From Marsupella aquatica (taxonomy: Eukaryota > Plantae > Marchantiophyta), in NCBI GenBank assembly GCA_973895155.1, contig OZ316898.1, forward strand, positions 11,431,187 to 11,495,186: DNA of 64,000 nucleotides, in the 5' to 3' direction. Made by a program: the position numbers and the translations under genes. Numbering within the stretch: position 1 is the stretch's first letter; each line of letters opens with the position of its first letter. Of this stretch, positions 3,049 to 63,439 are shown in pieces. Under the pieces are notes generated by a model that had not been told where the DNA came from, made no database searches, and worked only from the letters and a program-made list of their open reading frames with translations.

Positions 3049-6000
3049 TCAATAAAGAACCTCATCATATACAACATTTTTTGTCAACTTTGCTTGACCC
3101 TCCTCGGAATATGAAAGTAAAACCTTGATAGTTGTAGGTGATGTTGCCCTTGAGAATGTTACATACAACTGTCCATGACTAAATACAGGCTTTGAAAGCT
3201 GCAGCCCTACATGTTCTAAAGTCTGACCTTGAGCCTTGTTTATGGTCATTGCATATGCCACTCAAACGGGAAATTGGACCCTACGTAATAAAAAAGGGAG
3301 TGACTCGTCAGACATCAACGGAATCCGTGGGATAAATGTAAGGGCCCCTGCATGTTTTCCTATGAGAACACGTGCCTCAATGACACGACGATTCATTGCT
3401 CTCACAATTAGCCGAGTACCATTGCACAACCCCAAAGAGTGATCTATATTCCTAAGTAAAATGATAGGGCATCCAACCTTCAGTACCAACTTATGAGGTG
3501 GCAGACCACTCGGCGTGAGTGTATTCAAGAACTTCGTAAGGTAGAAATTCTCCCCTTCAAGCTGATCTGGACGATCTATGCTAAAAAACTCACTTGATTC
3601 CCCGGGAAGTCCTTCTAAGATAGAGTCATTAATTTTTTAGTGCCTCATCATTTGTCGGCGCCAGGATAGTTCTCTCACTTAAGAACCTATCGTCCACATT
3701 AGCAAGAGTTGGGTATATTGCCTGAATCAATGATTCCACTCGTCCCCCATCCACCACCATAGACTCAGGGCAAGTAATAAGATTATTTGAAGGCCCTCCT
3801 TTTGGGAGTTTATCATCGCCCAATTGTAGTAGCCAGTGCTCCGCAAATGTAACATTACCAAATTCAGGAGAGGCATTAGTTCCTCTTGCCCGTTTATTGT
3901 CAGTTAGCTTCAAAGTCCGTATACTACGCCACACATAAGACTTCTTCAAACACGACCCCACAATCTCCGGACGACTTGCCCTTGCCTTCACTGGAAGCAC
4001 TTGTCAAAAATCACCTGCAAATACAACTACAACCCCTCCAAAGATTTGGTCGTTATTTGGTATGTCGCGTAAAGTTCTATCCAACGCCTCCACTCCATGC
4101 CGATGGATCATGGATGCTTCATCCCACAAAATAAAAGTTTCCCTCCGCAATAATCCAGCAAGGTCAGATTGTTTTTGGATGCCGCATGTCGATGTCGAGA
4201 TTGGTTTCAATGGTAGCTTGAATCTTGAGTGTGTGGTGCGACCTCCATCTAACAAAAGACTTGCAATACCCGAGGAAGCTATGGCCAATGCAATGTCCCC
4301 ATCTGCATGGACTCTTCGAAGTAGAACATTCTCCACAAATGTTTTGCCCGTCCCCTCGGTCCATCAATAAAGAATGTCGCTCCATCTCGAGCCCTCACCG
4401 TTGCAAGTATTGTAGTGTACGTTGCCCTTTGACCCTCGTTCAACAATGGCTCATGCTCTGCAAGTTGTTGTAGAAGTACATCCATCGGGTAACGTGTCTC
4501 CTCTCTTATCAACCGGTTTCTATTTTCTTCCTCTTTGAAAAACTCCATACCTGGTTCTGGAAGACCAAACTCTAGCAATATTTTACCCACACTTTTCAAA
4601 GCCTCATCCATCAAATGTAGAGCAAAGCTCTGTTGCTGCTGCTCTATAGAATCTAAGAAGCCCATTGATTGCAAACGATACCTACAATCATCACTCAAAT
4701 TGGATGCATGTTGTGTCCACAGGTCGCACGGCTTGGCAACACCTCCAAACAACAATATTGTGATAAATAGTTGTCGAGTGCACCAGTGTGCATGCTTGCT
4801 GCTTCTTGAAGGCATCTATACCACTCCTCATCGTTCTCATACAAACCCCGGGCAAGAGCGGCGGCCTGAAAGGTTGGGTATACATTGCCCTCAAATGTGC
4901 GAAAGTCGATGAATGATGTTGCACCTTTGATGTGAAGAAGAAGCGCCCTCAAGTAGTACCGTTCACCCGCGGCTGGTGGCACAAAATACATCCTACTAAT
5001 GCTAAACCCTCTTCTTCGTGGGTTCCATGCACGGGAGGATGCATCCCACACAAACTCATTGGGGAAATTGCTATAGAAAAGTTGTCTCGCACGTTCATGT
5101 ACTATGTTAGCTCTGAACCACCCTGTGAGGGTTGTGTCCCTATGAGATTCTGGTTGGACCACATCATTGATCTCAGAATCCTCATTGAACATTACCGATT
5201 GTTCCCCCTCACAATGCACTTGCAACCTTTGCACTGAAGTAGTACTCTCAGACATTTCAAACTGATTGATGCGCCATACTCCTTCAGCAGGAGACACATA
5301 TCTAGCATCTAAATGTTCCTTTACTTCGTCTCGTTGCTCAACCTCCACCGTTGCTTTATCGTGCCCTTTATAACAATACTTATATAAATACTTGATTGCT
5401 TTAATCGAAGAACATCTCCACATTGATATGAGCATTAAATCTCATGCTCAAATATGGACTATGAGGAACAATCCACCTATTGTCAAACTTAAATGTGCTT
5501 CGATCGTTTGAGAAACTACGGCCATCATCCCGATGTCGATACAAAGGAAACCCATCATCTCCAAAAACTATTTTGGATGAAAATGATCGCGGATAGCCCT
5601 TGCTACACTATCCGTCGACCATGCAAGGTGAGTTTGGATACCCGCGACCGCATGGACCATGGACCATGGACTTCATGAATAATAGTCTGATATAATTGGG
5701 GATGTACTTGTGCGTCCGGTATCTTTGCCGAAACCAATTCGTCAACCAACTCCAGGGTGCGCAACTTGTGTCGTTCCACCAATATTATCAGTATGTGGGC
5801 GTGCGGCAAACCCCTCTTCTGAAATTTGATGACATACATAGAAGAAATAGGTGTACCTAATATCCCTGCCTGAATGTCCGCCAATAGGGCCTTCAACTTA
5901 AGTTTGAATACTCTTGCAACAATGTCATCGCGGTTGGCCGGGGTCTGGTAGGGGTAGCACTCCGCTCTAATTTCAGGCCATTCAGGATTGCACGTAAAAG

Positions 6001-9469: not shown

Positions 9470-10260
9470 TCAGCCGGTGGCAAAGGGGGTTGAGGCAGGT
9501 GGCAAAGGGGGTTGAGGCAGGTGGCAAAAGGGGGAGTTTAGGGAGGGCCAGATATCCCGACTACAGGGGGGCGACCAAATGGGGAAGCGGAAGCCGGGAG
9601 CTCCAATTTGTACTCGCCTTGATGGGCGAGTGCATAGGGGTCCGTGGGAGGCAGCGCGCCCAAGGGAAGGGAGTGAGCAAGGAAGGGAGGGAGCATGCAT
9701 GGGGAGGGAGAGAGCGCGCATGGGGAGGGAGGGAGCGAGGCCCAAGGCAGCACGCACATGGGGAGGGGAAGGGCCACAGCAAGGCTCCAGAGTAGGAGCG
9801 CAGGCGCATGGGGAGGGGAAGGGGAGCAGGCTAGTGGGCAGTCTGCGAGGGGGAGCCAGAGCGCAGGCGCACGGGGAGGGCTCCACGGAAAGCGGAAGGG
9901 GCAGGGAGCGCAGGCTCGTACTTGCCCAGTGGCCAGTGACTGGAGATAGCATCGGGAGAGGGAGCGCATGGGGATGCGGCTTGCCGGCTCTCTCTCGCCA
10001 TGTGGGAGGGGAGTGCGCCTTTCGCCCATGGGTTTCGTCCATGCCATGCCATTGTGGTCGTGGATCAAGGAAGGAGGATTCAAACGGCCGTGGCGTCAGG
10101 AGCGCATCTGACCAAAGCGCCTGGAGTAAAATGCCGCAAGCAATGCTGACATGTCTAAGATGTGGTCGGCTAGGGCAGGAGGATTCAAACGGTTGTGGGG
10201 TCGTTTGAGTAAAACGCCTGGAGTAAAATGCCGCAAGTGATGCTGATGTGTCCAAGCTCG
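9470..10260. repeat. G/purine-rich low-complexity and short tandem repeats in the H1 5' region
   Basis: GGCAAAGGGGGTTGAGGCAGGT twice plus a partial copy; repeated (C)GCATGGGGAGGG motifs; duplicated GGAGGATTCAAACGG...CGCCTGGAGTAAAATGCCGCAAG block (~10073 and ~10178). Confidence 0.75.
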
Positions 10261-14543: not shown

Positions 14544-17500
14544 GTGTTTCACTTGAAACTACAAGGTCAAACAAATCAAGAGAGTGGTCACCATTACCTT
14601 GGACGCATGAATGTGGTTTGCCCATCATGTAAAGCCTTGCACTGGACAGCAGAGAAAGTGAGTTCTACAAAATTTAAGGACTCTCCATTTGGCAAGTGTT
14701 GTAGTCATGGTAGGGTGGATTTACCACCATTGCGATCTCTTCCTCCATTATTGGCAACATTGGTCTCAGGTGAGGGACCAACAAGTAAGAAGTTCTTGAG
14801 TCATATTCAAGCTTATAACTCAGCATTTCAGCTTGCATCCACCGGTGCTAACATGTCTGGAGAAGTACATGGTGGCATAAAACATCTTCGCATTCAAGGT
14901 GGGATCTATCATTCTATTGGTCCTCTTTATCCTGAGGTAGGACAACCCCCAAAATTTGCTCAACTTTATATTTATGACACTGAGCACGAGATAGAAAATA
15001 GAGGCAGAGTAATTATTGATGGTATTGAGATTGAGACCTTGAGAGGATTATAGAATCTTATGCGTGAGCATAATGCATATGTGCGATCTTTTCAAGCTAT
15101 AGCATGTGAAGTTGGTAGTCAAAATGTGCGCATTGTATTGAAAGCTAGCGAGAGAGGTCTTGATGCTAGACGTTATAACTTGCCGGTAGCATCGGAGGTT
15201 GCAGCCATTATTCCTGAAGATGGAAGTGAGGAGGTAGGTCCACGTGATATCATTGTATATTTCCATGGAGGAGGGGTACGTCGTATATCTGATCTCAATC
15301 AGGCATATATTCCTTTGCATTTTGTTCTCCTATTTCCATATGGTGAGGCAGGATGGCATATAGGCATTCGAAAACATAATTCTTCTATATTGCAAGAGAC
15401 TATTGCTATGGAAAGCGAAGAGGAAGTGGTGGAGAATATTATTCACGAGAGGGCCTACGACAATGTCATGGATAATGATGCACATGCAAATACAAGGACA
15501 AAGAATGTTACCCCTTTGGAGTTTGCCTCATTTAGGCTTCATACACGAGAAGATAATCCTATGGAGTGCATGGATGGTAGTAGGTTGACACGTTTTGATA
15601 GGCTTTATCAGGAGTACATGGTGGATGTGTATGCCACTATTGAGAGCCAGAGGTTGACCTATATACGTACCCATCAACCTCAGTTAAGAGCGCATCTATA
15701 TCAGGGAGTTCAAGATGCAGTGATGAGACATGATCATGCAGCAGATATTGGAAGACGCATCATACTACTTTCAAGCTTTATAGGAGGTCCACGTCATATG
15801 CACCAATTATTTCAGGATGTCATGGCTATTGTTAGGCATTTTGGTAAGCCTGATTATTTCTTGACCATGACATGCAATCCTACATGGAAAGAGATCATGG
15901 ATGAGCTGGTATGTAGCAATCAAAAAGTACGTAGCGTTCTAACTTGATTGCTCTGGTGTTTGAACAAAAGAAGAAGACATTGTTAGATTTGCTAGAAAAT
16001 CAAAAGATTTTGGGTAATTGTGTGGCAAAGATACATACTATAGAATTTCAAAAAAGAGGTTTGCCACATATTCATCTTTTGATGTGCATGGGTTATGATG
16101 ACAAATCACGAAATGCTACCCAGATTGATGATGTTATTTCGGCGGAGATACCAGATCCTATTTTGCATCCAAGTCTTTATCAAACTGTGGTTACTTGCAT
16201 GATGCATGGACCATGTGGTGCCCAAATGCGAAATGCTCCATGCATGAAAAATGGAGTGTGCTCAAAAGGTTTTCCAAAACCTTTTGCCTCCCACACCACA
16301 TTGAACGAGGATGGATACCCGACATATCGCAGGTGCGTTGATTTCAATTATTTATATATCATGCTTTTATGTACTTATATTATATTGATATGTGTATATA
16401 GTTATATTTACCTATGATTTTTTCTTACTTTAAACATTGCAGACGAGATGATGGTCGTACGGTGAAGAAGAAAAATTGTTTCTTAGACAATCGTTGGGTG
16501 GTGCCATACAATAAATTACTTTGCACACTTTTTGATTGTCACATAAATCTTGAAGTTACAAGTGACATTGCTGCTGTGAAGTATATATATAAATATGTGT
16601 ATAAGGGATCCGACGCAATTTTGGTCCGATTATCACAAGCTGGTGGCACAATTGAGAAGGAGGCACCAGTAGATGAGGTCTCAGAATATCGAGATGCATG
16701 GTATTTATTTCATTTTATATTTCTATTCTATTTTTTCTAATTCATTAATCAATTTCAACTTTTTCAATCATGTGAATTGTGTTAAGAGTTTTTGTACAAT
16801 TGTTATTTGATTCCATTTGAAGATTTCTCAAATCATACTAATATTTTTGTTTGTAGATACATCTCATCTGTTGAAGCATGTTGGCGCATTTTCAAGTTTC
16901 GTTTGCATTCGGAAGAGCCAAGTATTGTTCGATTAACTGTTCATCTTGAGAATGAGCAAAGTATAGTTTTTAGTGAGAACGTAACGACCAAGGAGATTTT
17001 ACAATGGAGGGTTGCAACCACATTGACAGAAGGGTTTGCAACGAATGTTAGTGATCCTGAGGCACGACAATATAAATACCATGAGTTTCCACTTCATTAT
17101 AGTTGGAACAAGAACAAAAAAAATGGATCATCCATAAGAAAAAGATTAAAGGCTGCGGATATCCCATCGGTCGTTTATATTTGACTCATCCAGGTATTAT
17201 TTTTATCTTGACTTAATTGCACTCAAATAATTGAATTTATTATTATTATATTCAAAATATTTATTTTAATGATTTTTTATTGTGTAGGTGAAGGAGAACA
17301 TCATTGGATGCGGTTACTTCTTCATCATATTAAAGGGGCTATTGGATATGACAGTTTGAAAACAATTGGTAATGTAGTCATGCCCACTTTTAAGGAGGCA
17401 GCAATTAAGTTGGGACTCTTGGAAGATGATTCAGAGGTTATTGACTGTTTGAGGGAATGTTCAAAAATTCGGACTGGACGTGCAGTCCGTCAACTTTTTG

Positions 17501-35369: not shown

Positions 35370-36820
35370 AATTAATCCGTGGACCCCCATGTTCATCCAA
35401 GGAATGTGTGTGTGATTAAGTGAAATCAATTTTCATCAAGGCGGTAACTAACGATTTTGAGTCTCCCGATGGTGTTGGTGTGTGCTCGTACAAAAACAAA
35501 TGCTCAAAAGATAGAGATTTATCAAACGAAAGGTTGAATGTGGAGGAATTGAGTTTTTTTATAGGTTTTGCTTACACATTGGAGAAATCATCTTTCAACC
35601 ATTTGTTGATTGATTGTTTGTGAGTTGCATTGAGCATTACCGCCACAAGACAGACTGGAGCACAACACTCAGTTGTTGGCAAAAGAGCGCTTGTCGATTT
35701 GGTGGGAAGAACACACAAAACAAACAAGCCATCATTTCAAACAAAGGATTTGTAGTTATTTTTAAGAAAGCTATGGTGTGAAGGGAAGACCAACAATTGT
35801 TTCTTTGACATAGAGGCTGCATTTGGCGTCAACCTGTGTTTTCAGTTGAAGACTATCTAAGAGATGCGAACAATTCAAGCCGGGAAGCAAGCATTGTGGA
35901 CCAGCGATGACGACGTAATCAAAGAAATCAATTTGTAGTGGCTAAGTTTGTGACGGTGACGAGATTGTGATATCTCTTAATCGAGAAAGGGTTTCCAATG
36001 AGCCTCAAATTGACAAATTTTGTCAAGTTCCATATGAGTTTTTGAATTTCTTTGCCTTTCCAATGAGTGTGAGTATAATAAATTTTGATCATGAGTTCAT
36101 GAATTCTTTTAGCTTTCTAACATTGAATCCGACATTGACAAATTCATTTCAGATTTTGTCACTGTACTCAAGAGATCAGGAGATTTTCAATCTCTTTAGC
36201 TTTCTAATGTGTGACATTGAGATTATTTGTCAAGAAATAGAGAGATCATGAGTATCTAAATTTCTCTAGCTTTCCAATGAACCTAACATTGATAGATTTT
36301 GTCAAGTACTAAGGAGATGATTAGTTTTTAATTTTACTCTAACTTTCTAATGAGTGTGACATTGAGATTTTATCATGACATTACTAAAGAGATCATGAGT
36401 TTCTAAATCTTGATCTTGAATTTTCCAATGAATCAAACATTGACAGATTTTATCAAGTACTAAGGAGATTTATTATTTAGTTTTACAATGTGAAGCCAAA
36501 GGGATTTTAACTATGTACATTTACAATTAAAAAATACAAGAATTTTGATATAAAACACTGATATATCTTTGACAAACATCAAAATGGTAACTTTGTTTTA
36601 CTAAATGACATCTCTTCCTTTGTATTTTGGTTTTTTTTACGTTTAATATTTACGGCATGGCGCCCCAAAAATTACGTTGCTTTTGCCACAAACAGGAATG
36701 TGCACGTTTGTTATTGCTAAAAGTAGGATCATTCCTGTTTGTGGCTGGTTGTGGTGATGTGGCGCAACCTCATGGCAGAGAATTTGCAAGAGACCCCTAA
36801 TGGGGGTCCGTAATCATTAG
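35370..36820 (+). mobile_element. Non-autonomous dispersed repeat, copy 1 (probably rolling-circle/Helitron-like)
   Basis: Starts AATTAATCCGTGGACCCCCAT; ends with hairpin GACCCC-TAATG-GGGGTC then CGTAATCATTAG|T; collinear with 56172-56830 and ~62370-62656; internal degenerate tandem units at 36000-36470. Confidence 0.75.
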
Positions 36821-56890: not shown

Positions 56891-58730
56891 TGTGTGTAAG
56901 TTATACGCCCGGTTATACGATCATACAGAATCCACCATTCACCTCAAGTGGTGGACCTTGCCACCCAGCGCCCTCACCAATCCCAGCACTCACGCCTAAG
57001 TGCCCTTGGTGCCCAAACGCCTCCACGGAATACCTCGAGCAAGCACCCTAGTGCCCCTTGCACCACTAGTGGCCCCTCCCATACGAAGCCGCACTTGCTC
57101 TCCTACTCGACCGCTACTCAACGGTCCTCACTGTCTGCACAAGCAACCAAGCATCTCGGTAAGTAACCCTTCTAGATCTAGAACTCGCCAAGTCTAGCAT
57201 CCTAACTCAAGCTCAATAGACGTTGGTAAATAGGTCAGCAATAGGTCCTCCCAATGCCATAAGCCAAAACCAGAGCCCTCGCCCACTGTTCGTCCAGAAC
57301 AGCTCCTTCCTTGGGCGCAGCCCGGGTTCACCCTCGTACCTATCCATCACCAACTAACCGCCTTGACCTCAGGACATGCTTATGGCCCAAATTAGCGTAG
57401 CTTGTCCTAAAGTTTGTCTCAAGCTTGTCCCAACACGCCGGGACCAGAATGGCCCCGACTCTAGAATCCAACTCCCGGTTTACCCCACTGATGGTCTGGG
57501 GGCCAAACACTTTTGGGATTCAACCCCCACACCTACTTGGCCTAGCCTCCCCAACGCCAGCTCCCTAGGGAGACTGAACGCGGCTTGGCTATTATTCGGC
57601 GGGATTTGGCAAGCGGGCAAGTTAACACCCGCAAGCCCCGAGAGCCCAAGGTACCCCCAGTCTCAAGATCTTTCCAACGCACCCAAGAAGTTCTCCAACG
57701 GACTTCCCGTTGGGAAGATATTGTCACTTCTGTTTGGCGGTCTCCCTTAGTGTCGTGACCGCCGCGGCTCACGACTTCGGCTCGCCCTTAGCACCCAGGG
57801 AGACCACTCCCCTCATATATGCTTATGGAGACCTGCCACCCCCAGACCAGCTTTGGTCCCTAAACATTTGGCCCCCAACCCGGATCCCATCGCGCATAAT
57901 GGGCGCGTCACCAATTGGCAACGCCCATAACTTTCTTGATAGGCATCCGCAAGTGGAGTGCCTTAGCCCGTTGTGATCTGCAGGCCGACCCGATACTCAG
58001 GTATGATCGCCGCTCAAGGCCCCCGACCGGCCCAACCCGGATTGGGCCACAACTTGCGCCCCAAGCGTCCGTTGCCAATGGCGTCAACTCCATTGGCCTT
58101 GGGCCCAAGAGGAGCTCACACCTCGGGGGGGTCACTTCCATGGAAGTGGCATATCATGTGCGACAAAGTATAGGGCCATTTAAATGGTTTTGGCGGAAGA
58201 CTTATTAAGTCTTCTATGGAAATATAGGGTTGTTTAATTGCAAAATGCATACGTGTCATCACATGATTGGTGTCGTACAACTTTCTAGAAAGTGACTTAG
58301 GGGGGTCATAAATGACCCAAACCGTCGCACGTGATGTATGACCCCTCATATAGTGACCCCCCCAAGGCTCACACTCAAGCCCTCAGAACTCAAAGTCCAT
58401 CCGGAGGTCCAGGTGGCCATCCTTGAGCCCGACTCATTTCTCCTTGACCCGACCAGCTCTCAACTAGTCCAAGTCCTTAGTGTGTGTCACCAGCTTGGCT
58501 CCTTGCCTCGCTAGCACCACGTCTCGTTGCCCACAAGTCTCCCCATGTTAAGTCCTCCCCAGATGGCCTATACGGGCCTGGACCATAAGGGAGCTCAGCG
58601 TCGAAGTCAGCGACACCGGAGCTAAGTGTTAAGGTAGTCGAGTTCCGCGACTCCTCACAACTCAAACTCAAAACTCAGTTGAAGATCACGTTTCTTTGAC
58701 GCAGTGTAATAGAATGGTAGTACCCCTTTC
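56891..58730. mobile_element. GC-rich ~1.85-kb non-coding insertion, possibly LTR-derived
   Basis: Sharp GC increase relative to the flanking repeat; absent from copy 1; TATA-like GCATATATGAGGGG on minus (~57809-57823); no recognisable protein; TSD not cleanly verified. Confidence 0.35.
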
Positions 58731-61700
58731 ACAATCATCTCTCGTTGGTATCTCTCTCATCGAAAGTATAGGGTAATGAGGGTTTAGTCAGCCGTTACCA
58801 GGGTGTAACGGGCGACCAAGTTCTGACAGAAGGTTGACCGGCGGGAGCCGGGAAACCTTCGGGAAGAACCTGGGAGCGCAGGTTACGCTCGGTAACGAGT
58901 GATCTGAACCGTCATTACTCGACGTAACGGAGGGTTAGGATTTGGCGACTCCCAATAGCCGGTGCACCAATGAGAGAACTGGGCGACAATCAAAATAGTC
59001 AAGGGGCAAAGCGAAGCGCTACGGGCTCAATCTGCTCATTCAACGTTTCATAGGTTTTCAGTTTAGGTATTTTGAGGAGGCGGCGACACGCTGCTGCTTT
59101 CTATCATTCGATACTGTGCTCTGTGTGCTCGATGTTTGTGTTTTTGTGGATGGCGCGAGCGGGAGTGCAAGCTGCTGCCAAGGCGTCCTTGCTTTGATTG
59201 GCGGGGTTCTGTTTGTGATGGACAATCATCAACTTGCGGAGATGATTTCAAATGGATCAAAGAAGACTGAAGCTCGATGGTGATATCCTTTCCTGGCATT
59301 ACGTTTATATTTAAGATTGTGTTTCATTGTTTCAGAATCATTCGAACTCCATCAATGGAATGACACTGCTGGAAGCTTTTGATCCTGTTTCATCATATTC
59401 AATCATAACTGCGGGTCTAATTCACGTTATGGCAGGAAGTGAAGCAGTGAATGATGTGAGTGAGGATGTGAGTTTGGATCGACTGAGTGCGGACGAAGAT
59501 AATGTAGATGCGCTATTCTTTAACGAGTTCGAGGATGTTATGGGCGTGGAGATTGACATGGAAATGGTTTATGATGTCCCTGTGTCTGTGGTTTCAACAG
59601 AGTCGCTTGGTGAAGCAAGCTTGGAGGTGAGCTCTCTTTCGCTGAGCATACCTGGTTTACGATCGGTTCCAGATCAAATGCTAGCTGATGCTGGGAGAGG
59701 GGAGGAGAAACTCCCATCGGACCAGAATGATCGATGGGCATTGAAACGTGCTGACTCGCTACGTGCTGCCCTGAATTGGGATACGTCAATTTTCTTGGGA
59801 GACTTACCGTTACACATGCTCAATTTGCTCCTCAGTAACCTTTTCTCCAGGGCTGTCAAGGTTGATGGTAACACGTATCCTTCCTCAACACTAATGAACA
59901 TGATGAATGCATTCAACCGTATCATTAGACGTGCAAGTGATCTCAGGTCTGTCAGAGGACAAGGTAATCTGATCGAGAAAGGGTTCAATATCAACTCTCA
60001 TCCCGTTTTTGCAAAGACTCGAATGGTACTGAAAGCTGCAGTCAAGAAATCAGCACGGGAGGGAGTGAACAAGAAACGAAAGAAGGTAAGTTCTCTTATT
60101 TGTTTCTAGTTTATTGCCAGGTTTCTTGATCCGTTTTTATATTGCTGAGTTCTTTATGTTTGTTTCTGATGTCTGTATCCTATTGTTCACAGGCTGAAAT
60201 AATTACGGAAGAAATGGAGACCGCAGTTCTAGCAGATATAGATCATCAAATAACCAGCCCCCATGGATGCCAGAAGCGTCTTGCCTTCTTTTTCTTGGTT
60301 CGGCTGGGGATTCGAGGTGGCTCGGAGTTGTACAACCTGATGAGACACAATGTTCGGCTGTGTAGTGACAAGCAGGGACGAGAGTATGTGCAGTAAGTGT
60401 CGTAGGCTCTATAGGACGTTTCCGTTTATCATTTTCTTGCTGGATTTTAGCTTGTTTGATATCTGACTGGATTTCAGTTTGTTTGCAGTTTTGAAGAAAG
60501 AGAGAGCAAGAACAATTCGTACTCCCTTGATCGCTACAATGAAGAACAATTCTGTAAATTGTTTTACAGTTATGAGATTGATTTTATCATTTGTTTGAAA
60601 CAGTATTTGCGACATTTGCCTCCTCTGGAGGGTGACACAAAACCAGACCTTTTCTTGGGGCCCATTACTAACCCTGTGAGCAACGTGTGGTACAATCGTA
60701 AGCATAAGGTTGCACAGGAACGGGCTGGAAAGTGGCTAAGTAATATGTTGAGTGTGGTTGGATTGCCTCGTGACCTGTTTTCAAACCGCAGTGGAAGATC
60801 CACTCTAGTAACTCGCATGGCAGCCCGAGGAGTGCCTGACGAAGTGGGGATGATGATTAGTGGTCACCATACAAATAGTGGATACTCCAGATATGATCGA
60901 ACACAAGAGCTGAAAATGAATGCTGCCGTTCTTGTTTCTGCCAGTACAAATGTGGATTACGAGAAAGCCTTGATAGAAGTGTCCAAGCAATTTGTGGAGG
61001 AGAAGGTTGTTGGAAACTCGGGACAGTTAAAACCTCTGATTGAAAAGATCAGCTCGAAACCAAATCTGCAGCTTTCAGTTATCAGCCCACGATGTGAGGT
61101 ATGCTGGTGTCTCTTATGTTTAGATATCTGTGTTGTATTTGTTATCTGGTTTTTGTCCGGTTTGGAGGCTTAATACTCTTGTTGTTGGTGACAGGAATCA
61201 AGCAGCAGTAAAGTGGATGAGGAACGGGTAGTGAGTCAGACAAAGAAAGGCAAGCAGGTTCGTAGTTTTGTTTCAGTGTTTGTTCTGCTCTTGTATCCAC
61301 ACCTTACATTTATTCTGCTCTTGTACTCATACCTTGTTGTGGTTTGCTATTACAGGAAGCACTTGAAACAGTTGAACCTGTTGACACAATAGACCGGGAG
61401 CGGATGATGGCTGAGTGGCACAAGAAATTTGATGAGATCGACTGGATATCAGGGATTGCCAAGAATGATCCAGAATTTTCAGCTCGAACTTTCAGTGGAG
61501 GCACTAGTAGTTCTAGTATTTCTGTTGGCAATAGTCTCTCAGGGAATAGATTTGAGAACTGCACTATCACCTTTATTGTCAAGGATGATAAGGAGAATAA
61601 AGATCCGAAGAAGGAGACTTGATGTGATTCAGGAGATTCAGTTTTTGCATAGCAAGATTCAATCCATGAGTTTCCTGGATGATCAATTGTTTCTTTCCGT

Positions 61701-62358
61701 CAATTTTATCACAGGATTCATGATCTAATGATCCCTTTGATTTCAATAAAATGTCGAATTTCAGAGATTACTGAATGCTGTGATGGTCTTTCGACCTGAG
61801 TAATACAACTACTGTATTGTAATGGAGTGTATTTTTGAGTCCTCAAACAAAAATATGCATAGGACAGTGAGTTGCAACGCTGCTCGCTACTCATCGGAAG
61901 CAAATGTGATGGAGAGAAATTGTGAAGTCCCATATTTGGGAAGTGTTGTACTTGTCCACCGCTGTATCCATGGAGTTCATACGACAAAATATCTTACCAA
62001 AATCAAGTTATTAAATTGAACTCAGACTGTGTGGACGGAACATTCAAATTGGATGGACACCTGTCAAGGATGGACGGAATATGCCATTTGCATCAAGAAC
62101 GTACTATTTCCGTAAGCGGATTATTACATTCCATAGGCCCATTATGACATTCCGTAAGTCAATTATGAAACTCAGTAAGGAATTATGTCATGTCAGACCG
62201 GATATTATGGAAATAAACAAGTATGATGGAAACCTTCACCAGACGGTAAGCCAAACCCTAAGCCTCTGTTACGAGAGAGGATCAAGTATGAGCCGTTGAC
62301 AATCATCTCTCATTGGTATCTCTCTCATCGAAAGAGAGAGGATCAAGTATGAGCCGTT
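58731..62358 (+). mobile_element. Crypton-like tyrosine-recombinase element with miniature split direct repeats A1...B1-A2-B2
   Basis: A1 58731-58766 = A2 62299-62334 (36 bp, 1 mismatch); B1 62273-62297 = B2 62334-62358 (25 bp, identical); single YR gene between them; no RT or gag; no long TSD. Confidence 0.85.
59429..61622 (+). CDS. DUF3504/Crypton-type tyrosine recombinase, at least 5 exons, ~598 aa, open throughout
   Basis: Exons 59429-60085, 60193-60392, 60489-61098, 61195-61257, 61356-61622 join in phase. Motifs VKVDGNTYPSSTL, LGIRGGSELYNL (R), EERESKN (K), LFLGP...WY, SNRSGRST (HxxR position, H replaced by R), ISGH (H), YSRY (Y), C-terminal FENCTITF. The start may lie in an upstream exon 59252-59279. 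Confidence 0.88.
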
Positions 62359-63439
62359 ACTTACGTTCTTTTAGAAGCAGTTATCTAACTAATTACATAT
62401 TAAACAATTAAAAACACTCAAAATATAACTAATATGAGAAAAAAATACATCTTTTCCTTTGTATTATGGTGTTTTTAACGCTTAATACTTACGGCGTGGC
62501 ACCCCATAATTTACACGAATATGAACACAAACATGAGAAGGACCTTTTAGTTTTCCAGAAACCCTGCTCTATCCTGTTTGTCACCATCCTCGCTGATGTG
62601 GTGCATTCTCTTGGCAGCAAATTTGCAAGGAACCTTTAATGGGGGTCTATAACTAATGAAGACAAACTCCAAATAATCAGGACATCATTTACAGGTCAAA
62701 ATTACAGCTACCTCCAGAAGAGGTTTTCTTTCAATTCTTTTCAGCCGTTCTGCCCAAATTCATTCCCAACTCTGCCTTTCCATCCAAGATTCACATTCAA
62801 CCCGCCATCCTAGCTTAATTTTCTTGAAAAGTTAGTGCAAGCTGTTTTGTTTTTCTCTGTACGTTGGATTTCATTATACCCCTTAAGAGCTTTTGTTGGC
62901 ACTCATTTTGTTCCCCTTTTAAATTGCTCCTCGTCCATATAGTTTTCTTTAGTTTTCTCCATACTGACAAAGTATGGGTACATAAGTCAACTCAACATTT
63001 GAAGGATCCTATCCAAACTTAGAAATCCCATCAGTGAAAGTAAAAGGTTCCAAAATTTTTGTGGTTATAAAAGTGGCACTTCAACAGTTTAAATTAACAC
63101 AAAACACGGTAAAACCCTGTAAAATGGACTTAAAACAAGCCAAGCTGGTATCCTTGTTACAATCAATGTGTAAAGAAGTAGTAAACAAGGCCCAACTTTA
63201 CAAACATGTTTAGAATATTCTTGTAGTTCCAGCTGGCAGCAAACTTTTCTACTATACTTTACAGGAAAATTTATTTTGACAAGGGGACGGGATCTCAAGC
63301 TTGCAGATATGTTTTGCTCAGGGCAAGGGATCTTAGGAATGTGGAGTAATTGGGGGGTAAAACCTGTTATATATGCCCCACTGGTAATGTAGAAATGAGG
63401 CAAACAGAAAGTCAATTCAACAATCAACCACAACATTTC

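Follow-up and report, generated by a model that had tools for sequence, protein, structure and literature searches.

A probable Crypton-type DNA transposon inserted in a host tandem repeat of the liverwort Marsupella aquatica, with a palindrome spanning its joined ends

The window analysed here is a 64,000-nucleotide stretch of contig OZ316898.1 of Marsupella aquatica. Near its right end, a tyrosine-recombinase gene lies between short direct repeats, A and B. The copies of repeat A (58731-58766 and 62299-62334) are 35/36 identical, with one G/A difference, while those of repeat B (62273-62297 and 62334-62358) are 25/25 identical. The order along the locus is A1 - interior - B1 - g - A2 - B2, with one G common to A2 and B2. 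The positions, lengths and order given in a first-pass annotation were thus recovered as described. Neither A nor B was found elsewhere in the window at <=3 mismatches, and 0 matches were expected from 100 shuffles. The features, with the interpretation argued for below, are as follows.

58731-58766, + strand: A1, putative left part of host 61-bp unit 1, split by the element; the terminal G (58766) is shared with the junction of the element
58767-62272, + strand: element proper, probable Crypton-type tyrosine-recombinase DNA transposon, 3,506 bp plus one ambiguous G (58766 or 62273)
58771-58921, + strand: core hairpin, an imperfect palindrome of ~150 nt adjoining the 5′ end (-97 kcal/mol when folded as RNA, z -10.3)
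58924-58946, + strand: subterminal arm, 20/23 complementary to 62250-62272
59360-60085, + strand: coding exon 1, N-terminal region as far as the core-binding domain
60193-60392, + strand: coding exon 2, first catalytic Arg in the motif IRGGSEL
60489-61098, + strand: coding exon 3, Lys (ESKN), RSGR, GHH and the nucleophile Tyr (RYD)
61195-61257, + strand: coding exon 4, GT-AG borders read
61356-61622, + strand: coding exon 5 with the stop codon, matching the C-terminus of P0005
62250-62272, + strand: 3′-terminal arm, last letters GTTAC, pairing with 58924-58946 in the joined form
62273-62298, + strand: B1 and g, putative right part of the split host unit 1
62299-62358, + strand: A2-B2, putative intact host unit 2

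The gene model starts at the first in-frame ATG (59360) and has five coding exons, four GT-AG introns and an open frame of 621 codons. An extra 5′ exon (59218-59279) was rejected for being out of phase. The catalytic set is complete (R, K, R/KxxR, H, Y), and the RSGR of the window protein is KSGR in most relatives. Three homologs without introns (P0012, P0014 and P0140) are colinear with the window exons. Since no Pfam match was obtained for the window exons taken singly, the protein was classified by a family profile; the other interior ORFs gave no Pfam match either. The profile of 55 family members matches the Crypton-derived DUF3504 of QRICH1 (E 1.7e-18), and it also matches integrases of bacteria and archaea (E 1e-5 to 1e-3). 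PF12012 matches in 21 of the 55 members (best E 1.2e-35), and distant members show DUF3504, QRICH1 and Phage_integrase domains of Pfam. Exon 1 of the window gene gave weak QRICH1-like and ALOG-like leads. When the AlphaFold model of P0012 was compared with Cre, ~360 columns were aligned (E 4e-7, TM 0.61-0.68), so that a Cre fold is predicted for this family member. No RT, RNase H or methyltransferase was found in the interior. In a distant fern gene model, P0087, a 126-aa family match is fused to RVT_1, but the model is probably chimeric. The protein collection contains no paralog of the window protein above 70% identity. In summary, the repeats enclose a single spliced tyrosine-recombinase gene and no other Pfam domain, and the earlier description of an RT-less, intron-containing element of Crypton type holds. 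The retention of introns argues for a DNA intermediate. With its open frame and near-identical repeats the element appears young and intact, as had been suggested.

What are the A and B repeats? When 58767-62272 plus one G was deleted in silico, a 61 bp x 2.0 tandem repeat with 98% identity was restored, whose units differ at 1 of 61 positions. Thus, A1|B1 would be a host unit into which the element inserted, with A2-B2 as the intact unit beside it, and, as far as can be judged from the sequence, A and B are host sequence and not the element termini. The A2-B2 unit holds an unbroken target (...ATCGAAA-G-AGAGAGG...) with 9-10-bp inverted arms on either side. A third A-B unit adjoining the two was not significant, and the second copy of the right-flank repeat (36603-36808) has no A-B inside. 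It had been proposed that A2-B2 is a minimal 60-bp derivative integrated in tandem with the full element, but the flanks without the element are a plain host tandem. For the same reason, the empty site predicted earlier, CCCCTTTC-AC-TTACGTTC, is replaced by a predicted A-B-g-A-B.

The element ends were set by the continuity of the palindrome, by the homologous junctions in the related loci L001, L018, L006 and L008, by the tandem restored upon removal, and by contigs of a related organism. In the window and its relatives, the left junctions read flank-G(T)|AT(A/T)GG... and the right junctions ...TTAC(G)(T)|flank. The junction motif TTAC-GT-ATWGG, together with a palindrome across the junction, is common to the Calypogeia fissa paralogs and a multi-copy metagenome family. 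The bases common to terminus and target are GT in L018 and L006, ACG in L008, and TTACG(T) in L001. In the window, the target matches the junction at only one base (G), while 2-5 bases match in the other insertions. There are no LTRs or TIRs in the window element or its relatives, and the short end identities reflect the match of terminus and target. No A/B-like repeats surround six other insertions in three related lineages, and no enrichment of the CGTAA/TTACG motif was seen near the 3′ end.

Logan contigs were also compared. In contigs of a related organism, the match begins at 58764/58766, and the sequence upstream differs. The depth of A-B and its flanks is 5-7 times that of the interior, and contigs with a 'solo' A-B are present. 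In some contigs that lack the interior, A-B directly continues the left flank, and a diverged B is present in one contig. Among the reads of two organisms, several variants and one copy with an internal deletion (60963->62178) were found, all as short contigs. A circle-junction form was not seen among these short contigs.

Relatives of the element were found in Calypogeia, which has the nearest, and in Adiantum and metagenomes. In L001 of Calypogeia fissa, the 3′ end (9825-9857) is complementary to 5630-5662 at 30 of 33 positions. Its paralog L018 is alignable exactly from the first base to the last, while the flanks are unrelated. The metagenome family (L003-L011 and L017) consists of copies 99-100% identical with at least 3 different flanks on each side; they have a 124-nt palindrome at the start, and their contigs are plant-like. 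Unrelated flanks around the copies were seen in the relatives; for the source genome, the data on copies are short Logan contigs. For the second Calypogeia lineage (L002), no 3′ end was found within the locus. A metagenome scan with P0140 alone gave no match, and a closer alignment yielded a single weak locus (L016). Taken together, these sequences indicate that the window locus and its relatives are one bryophyte/fern lineage with exact termini. The lineage is of Crypton type and apparently undescribed so far; in agreement with the first-pass annotation, no description of a land-plant Crypton family with such features was found in the open literature searched.

The ends of the element are related to each other by a palindrome. 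As the 3′-terminal arm is complementary to the 5′ subterminal arm, the joined ends complete a palindrome of ~200 nt. This complementarity (20/23) is unique, since no other 30-mer in the window scores as high. The fold energy is -126.8 kcal/mol for the joined ends versus -100.0 kcal/mol for the integrated left end. Integration splits the palindrome into the 23-nt 3′-terminal arm and a 5′ part of ~180 nt. The core-hairpin structure is also present in L001, L002, L006, L008, L009 and L018. Compensatory changes occur at 20 of 40 consensus pairs, and the structure is kept while the sequence drifts. The left arm has a conserved 2-nt excess adjoining the crossover. Its position and conservation suggest that the palindrome serves as the recognition and synapsis site of the recombinase.

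Thus, the locus is very probably explained by a 3.5-kb Crypton-type DNA transposon that inserted in unit 1 of a host 61-bp tandem, A and B being host-derived. The element encodes a tyrosine recombinase alone, in its four-intron gene. By analogy with known Cryptons, it would most likely be excised as a double-stranded circle, and re-insertion would occur via recombination between the joined ends (GTTAC-GT-ATAGG) and a target matching the junction at 1-5 bases. Insertion between A and B in the first of the two tandem units would produce the order A1 - element - B1 - g - A2 - B2. A trait particular to the lineage is that the recombination junction lies inside the imperfect palindrome of the joined form.

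Do the repeats belong to the element after all? The first-pass annotation regarded A and B as miniature split direct repeats, in one version with B1-A2 as a built-in circle junction. On such a reading, with the repeats belonging to the element as in Ngaro, PAT and VIPER and B1-g-A2 copying the circle junction, the element would be an RT-less derivative or a new class of DNA transposon. The A1...B1-A2-B2 order has the form of split direct repeats, the copies are nearly identical, and the excess of A/B over the interior in the reads could represent solo relics. However, the palindrome runs unbroken across the joined ends (62272 to 58766) and leaves A and B outside, and the true ends appear to lie inside A1...B1, at 58766/7 and 62272. 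The six related insertions in three lineages lack such repeats, a simple tandem is restored once the element is removed, and there are contigs that carry the left flank on A-B without the interior, one with a diverged B. The lack of RT and the retained introns also speak against this reading, which is very improbable. A less drastic possibility is that the 61-bp duplication did not pre-exist but was made by or with the insertion, through unusual integration or through repair that copied the target on one side. The single difference between the units suggests a duplication as young as the insertion, and the sister insertion L008 lies within a 26-nt local duplication with an intact unit on the other side. 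But the duplication of L008 is weak and missed by TRF, no tandem repeat is found for L001, L018 and L006 once their empty sites are reconstructed, and a tyrosine recombinase that simply integrates a circle leaves no duplication. Such an origin of the tandem is quite improbable. Domestication as a single-copy host gene is extremely improbable; an open frame with intact catalytic residues would suit it, but the variant contigs and the internally deleted copy in two organisms, and the sharp boundaries common to multi-copy relatives, point to a mobile element.

The role of the hairpin is a separate question. In 4 of 4 independent lineages, folding is more stable for the sense than for the antisense strand, the difference being 14-26 kcal/mol under RNA parameters and 3-16 kcal/mol under DNA parameters, and G.T pairs are commoner on the sense strand. 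In addition, the basal stems covary and the apical loops are conserved. These features would suit an RNA, such as a structured 5′ leader or a small-RNA precursor of the recombinase transcript, instead of a DNA recombination site. However, the stem crosses the 3′-to-5′ junction, which a transcript of the integrated copy cannot contain, and all insertions have the crossover within the stem. The hairpin apex is inverted in L009, which is a DNA-level event. An Rfam search of 58500-62700 at E<=10 gave chance snoRNA- and CRISPR-like matches only, none on the hairpin. I therefore regard a function as RNA as unlikely. A tentative proposal about the palindrome as a DNA site, likewise with a low probability, is that the palindrome itself is the recombination substrate, folded as a hairpin or cruciform like attC or the CTX attP, and that the 2-nt bulge by TTAC^GT marks the strand. 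If this is true, it would account for targets needing just 1-5 matching bases, and a structure-specific site for a tyrosine recombinase would be seen for the first time in a eukaryotic transposon family.

Cryptons are a rare and little-understood group, with ends that are notoriously difficult to delimit. The lineage was compared with Cryptons of the DUF3504/CryptonA type (Goodwin et al. 2003; PMC3212892; Glomhopper, PMC13465315). As in these, the tyrosine recombinase is the sole enzyme, the gene has introns, and the tips have no LTRs or TIRs, with a few bases common to terminus and target. The recombinase of the window family is detectably related to DUF3504, as that of CryptonA is; in DUF3504 searches, CryptonA recombinases were matched while those of DIRS and Ngaro were not (Kojima & Jurka 2011, PMC3212892). 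Unlike known Cryptons, the lineage has liverworts and ferns as hosts; the only 'plant' Crypton in the 2011 survey was that of Chlamydomonas (Kojima & Jurka 2011, PMC3212892). The shared terminus-target bases are 1-5 bp and variable in the lineage versus 4-6 bp in Cryptons, and the conserved HxxR of Cryptons is KxxR in the lineage and RxxR in the window protein. The 3′ tip is an inverted copy of subterminal 5′ sequence, which is not described for Cryptons, and a hairpin or palindrome like the junction-spanning one is not mentioned in the Crypton literature examined. According to the available part of its report, CryptonF-1_cRei of Chlamydomonas reinhardtii is active and excises cleanly, and its terminus CACCG resembles the target CAYCG (PMC9977147). 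On this basis, it serves as the working model for the TTACG(T) terminus of the lineage and its G(T)/ACG/TTACG targets. It differs in belonging to Crypton group F and in having a more specific target motif, and that part of the report mentions no palindrome (PMC9977147).

Outside Cryptons, Ngaro, PAT and VIPER share with the window copy the formal repeat order and a tyrosine recombinase; in contrast, they encode RT and RNase H, and their repeats are present in all copies, whereas the window element has no RT, has introns, and is flanked by repeats that appear to derive from the host target. DIRS1, with its inverted terminal repeats and internal complementary region, also has a terminal sequence complementary to an internal, subterminal one, 'stitching' the ends in a circle. 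However, this stitching proceeds via reverse transcription of RNA, whereas the window element has a DNA palindrome around the crossover. The attC sites of integrons (IntI) and the attP of the CTX phage (XerCD) are folded single-stranded hairpins recombined by tyrosine recombinases. Like the window palindrome, they keep structure over sequence and have unpaired bases by the cleavage point, one strand folding better and the target sequence requirement being weak; they are bacterial, and use of the folded form by the window element is hypothetical. The conserved junction motif and the split palindrome would nevertheless offer an experimentally tractable recombination site of a eukaryotic tyrosine-recombinase transposon. 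The window copy also illustrates how the A1...B1A2B2 split repeats, by which Ngaro, PAT and VIPER are classified, can be imitated when an element inserts into a short tandem repeat.

The locus is very probably a Crypton-type element lying in a host tandem repeat. The 36-bp repeat A and the 25-bp repeat B were found exactly at the positions and in the order described in the first-pass annotation, which took them for split direct repeats of the element. No further match to either (up to 3 mismatches) exists elsewhere in the window, where none is expected by chance.

Features of the locus (window coordinates)
58731-58766, repeat A1 (one G/A difference from A2)
58767-62272, element proper
58771-58921, hairpin of about 150 nt, directly after A1
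59360, + strand, coding start (first in-frame ATG)
59360-60085, + strand, exon 1
60193-60392, + strand, exon 2
60489-61098, + strand, exon 3
61195-61257, + strand, exon 4
61356-61622, + strand, exon 5
62250-62272, 3′ end of the element, complementary to 58924-58946 (20/23, unique in the window)
62273-62297, repeat B1 (identical to B2)
62299-62334, repeat A2
62334-62358, repeat B2

When 58767-62272 and one G were deleted, TRF reported a tandem repeat of 61 bp x 2.0 with 98% identity; no third A-B unit was found beside the two. Thus, A1 and B1 together make up host unit 1, interrupted at ...ATCGAAA-G^AGAGAGG..., and A2-B2 is the intact unit 2, so that A and B are not borne by the element and the reading as split direct repeats is not supported. 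The contig evidence agrees with a host tandem repeat, since the A/B region and its flanks have 5-7 times the contig depth of the interior, and some contigs run from the left flank into A-B with the interior absent. In a related organism, one contig has A, then a diverged B, then the right flank, and in two contigs the match begins at 58764/58766 with a different sequence upstream.

Is the 61-bp duplication a product of transposition? No tandem repeat was found at the reconstructed empty sites of L001 and L018 (Calypogeia fissa) or of L006 (a member of a multi-copy family on plant-like metagenome contigs). The empty site of L008, from the same metagenome family, has only a weak 26-nt repeat, with the intact unit on the side opposite to that in the window. 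Thus, from these site comparisons, the duplication is read as a property of the host site, and a link to the transposition mechanism is given a small probability. In the window target, a 7-bp spacer is flanked by inverted arms of 9-10 bp, and the crossover falls at the spacer edge; this is suggestive, though a single case.

Decisive for the ends of the element is a palindrome that runs on across the junction of its two ends. The interior starts with the hairpin (-97 kcal/mol, z -10.3), and L001 has the same hairpin, with a similar apex sequence and covarying basal stems. L002 (a second Calypogeia lineage), the L001 paralog L018 and the metagenome family (L003-L011 and L017) have hairpins at this position too; the consensus has compensatory changes at 20 of 40 pairs. 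As in the window, the 3′ end of L001 (9825-9857) is complementary to another part of that copy (5630-5662; 30/33). The joined ends, 3′ to 5′, fold at -126.8 kcal/mol in the window and -124.0 kcal/mol in L006, against -100.0 and -106.5 kcal/mol for the respective integrated left ends. A and B lie outside the palindromic structure. In every lineage, folding is more favourable for the sense than for the antisense strand, a hint, short of proof, of a single-stranded form, DNA or RNA.

The insertion boundaries in relatives lie at the same ends. The metagenome family copies are 99-100% identical, with three or more different flanks on either side; their similarity begins at the palindrome and stops at ...GATTACG(T). 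L001 and L018 are alike from a common first base (GTATAGG...) to a common last base (...GTTACGT), with unrelated flanks. In every copy, the sequence across the left junction is flank-G(T)/AT(A/T)GG and that across the right one TTAC(G)(T)/flank, where the slash marks the boundary. The bases shared by target and terminus are G in the window, GT in L018 and L006, ACG in L008, and TTACG(T) in L001. About 1 kb inside L001 (6937-7939) is absent from L018, the remainder being 87-94% identical.

The coding capacity, the termini, the split palindrome and the few bases that terminus and insertion site share are established, as are multiple copies with different flanks in the relatives. The element would be excised as a circle whose joined ends form GTTAC-GT-ATAGG inside the completed palindrome; the recombinase would recognize this joined-end site and integrate the circle into targets of minimal identity. 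I lean slightly towards the palindrome being the recombination site. The left site copy in the palindrome is TTAC-GTAT(A/T)GG-GTAA; in each of the four lineages, its mirrored counterpart on the right has a spacer that is shorter by 2 nt. Thus, simple recombination between the two copies is precluded, and a 2-nt bulge would adjoin the crossover if the site were folded; use of the palindrome in folded form is unlikely.

Between A1 and B1 there is one gene, on the + strand, with an open frame of 621 codons and four introns, all GT-AG. An extra 5′ exon at 59218-59279 was rejected as out of phase. Intronless homologs align colinearly with the exons, in support of this structure of the gene. Each exon was queried singly; Pfam gave no match to the single exons, and neither RT nor any further domain in the interior. 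When the catalytic exon was run exhaustively with HMMER against 1.84 billion representatives, only 138 relatives came up. Those with species names are from the liverwort C. fissa and the ferns Adiantum capillus-veneris and A. nelumboides; all others lie on metagenome or Logan contigs, in some cases near plant-type genes (such as LTP and copia-like). A profile of 55 family members matched the Crypton-derived DUF3504 of QRICH1 (E 1.7e-18) and, at E 1e-5 to 1e-3, the bacterial/archaeal integrases XerA and IntI4; Pfam DUF3504, QRICH1 and Phage_integrase are present in distant members. The structure was predicted for the intronless homolog P0012. Its AlphaFold model (pLDDT >90 over about residues 190-555) superposes on Cre in both domains (Foldseek E 4e-7, TM 0.61-0.68). 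The window copy has the full catalytic set: Arg (IRGG), Lys (ESKN), RSGR, GHH and Tyr (RYD). RSGR is shared with the homolog P0005, and most relatives have KSGR there.

The sole RT link seen was P0087 of A. nelumboides (492 aa), with a 126-aa recombinase-family match and RVT_1 at residues 394-490; this gene model is probably a chimera that takes in an adjoining retroelement. In the metagenome family (L003-L011), a 132-aa ORF (L006:1239-1637) separates the palindrome from the recombinase gene; this ORF has no Pfam match and no counterpart in the window element.

The first-pass reading is supported in part: this is an RT-less, intron-containing tyrosine-recombinase element, of Crypton-like kind and without split direct repeats of its own. 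By the criterion of Kojima and Jurka (PMC3212892), similarity to DUF3504 points to Cryptons; the recombinases of DIRS and Ngaro gave no DUF3504 match in their searches. A short stretch common to the target and one end of the element, as in the window and the relatives, is a Crypton pattern. In the active CryptonF-1_cRei of Chlamydomonas (PMC9977147), the terminus is CACCG, the target CAYCG and the excision clean, a terminus-target likeness as in the window lineage. The window element agrees with Cryptons in the features that could be checked and differs from Ngaro, PAT and DIRS in both defining features, as it has no detected RT and no split repeats of its own. Cryptons are described as having neither TIRs nor long repeats (PMC3212892; Glomhopper 2026, PMC13465315), and these two papers mention no hairpin or palindrome; nor did a search of the full-text literature (Repbase/Dfam entries outside its scope) return a title or abstract on a Crypton palindrome. 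Relative to that literature, the liverwort and fern host range, K/RxxR replacing HxxR, and the junction-spanning palindrome are new.

Some further sequences were noted. Relative to L006:1064-1206 and L008:865-1007, the central ~42 nt (apex and inner stem) of L009:391-533 is an exact reverse complement, and the GA/AA internal loop outside it keeps its orientation; the centre of the palindrome has undergone a flip/flop inversion. Three tandem 21-bp units (TTCCGTAAG...ATTAT.ACATTC; 75-79% alike) at 62108-62173, 100-165 nt upstream of the element 3′ end, might serve as accessory binding sites; the relatives showed no enrichment of a matching motif. In contigs from two runs of one organism, 60963 is followed, after one G, by 62178; these contigs come from a copy elsewhere in the genome that has lost its middle part and is probably non-autonomous. 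Upstream, 58200-58652 is a very high-copy repeat (contig depth 100-1000x that of neighbouring DNA) with a sharp end at 58652/58653, beyond which each of the four runs shows many different continuations. This abundant element is distinct from the host sequence with A-B that it adjoins. The DNA 3′ of B2 (62443-62647) belongs to a moderately repeated family (~17x interior depth in one run), with a 70%-identical copy lacking A-B at 36603-36808. A 295-aa ORF at 15060-15947 with a Helitron_like_N domain (E 5e-33) marks a Helitron-type element.
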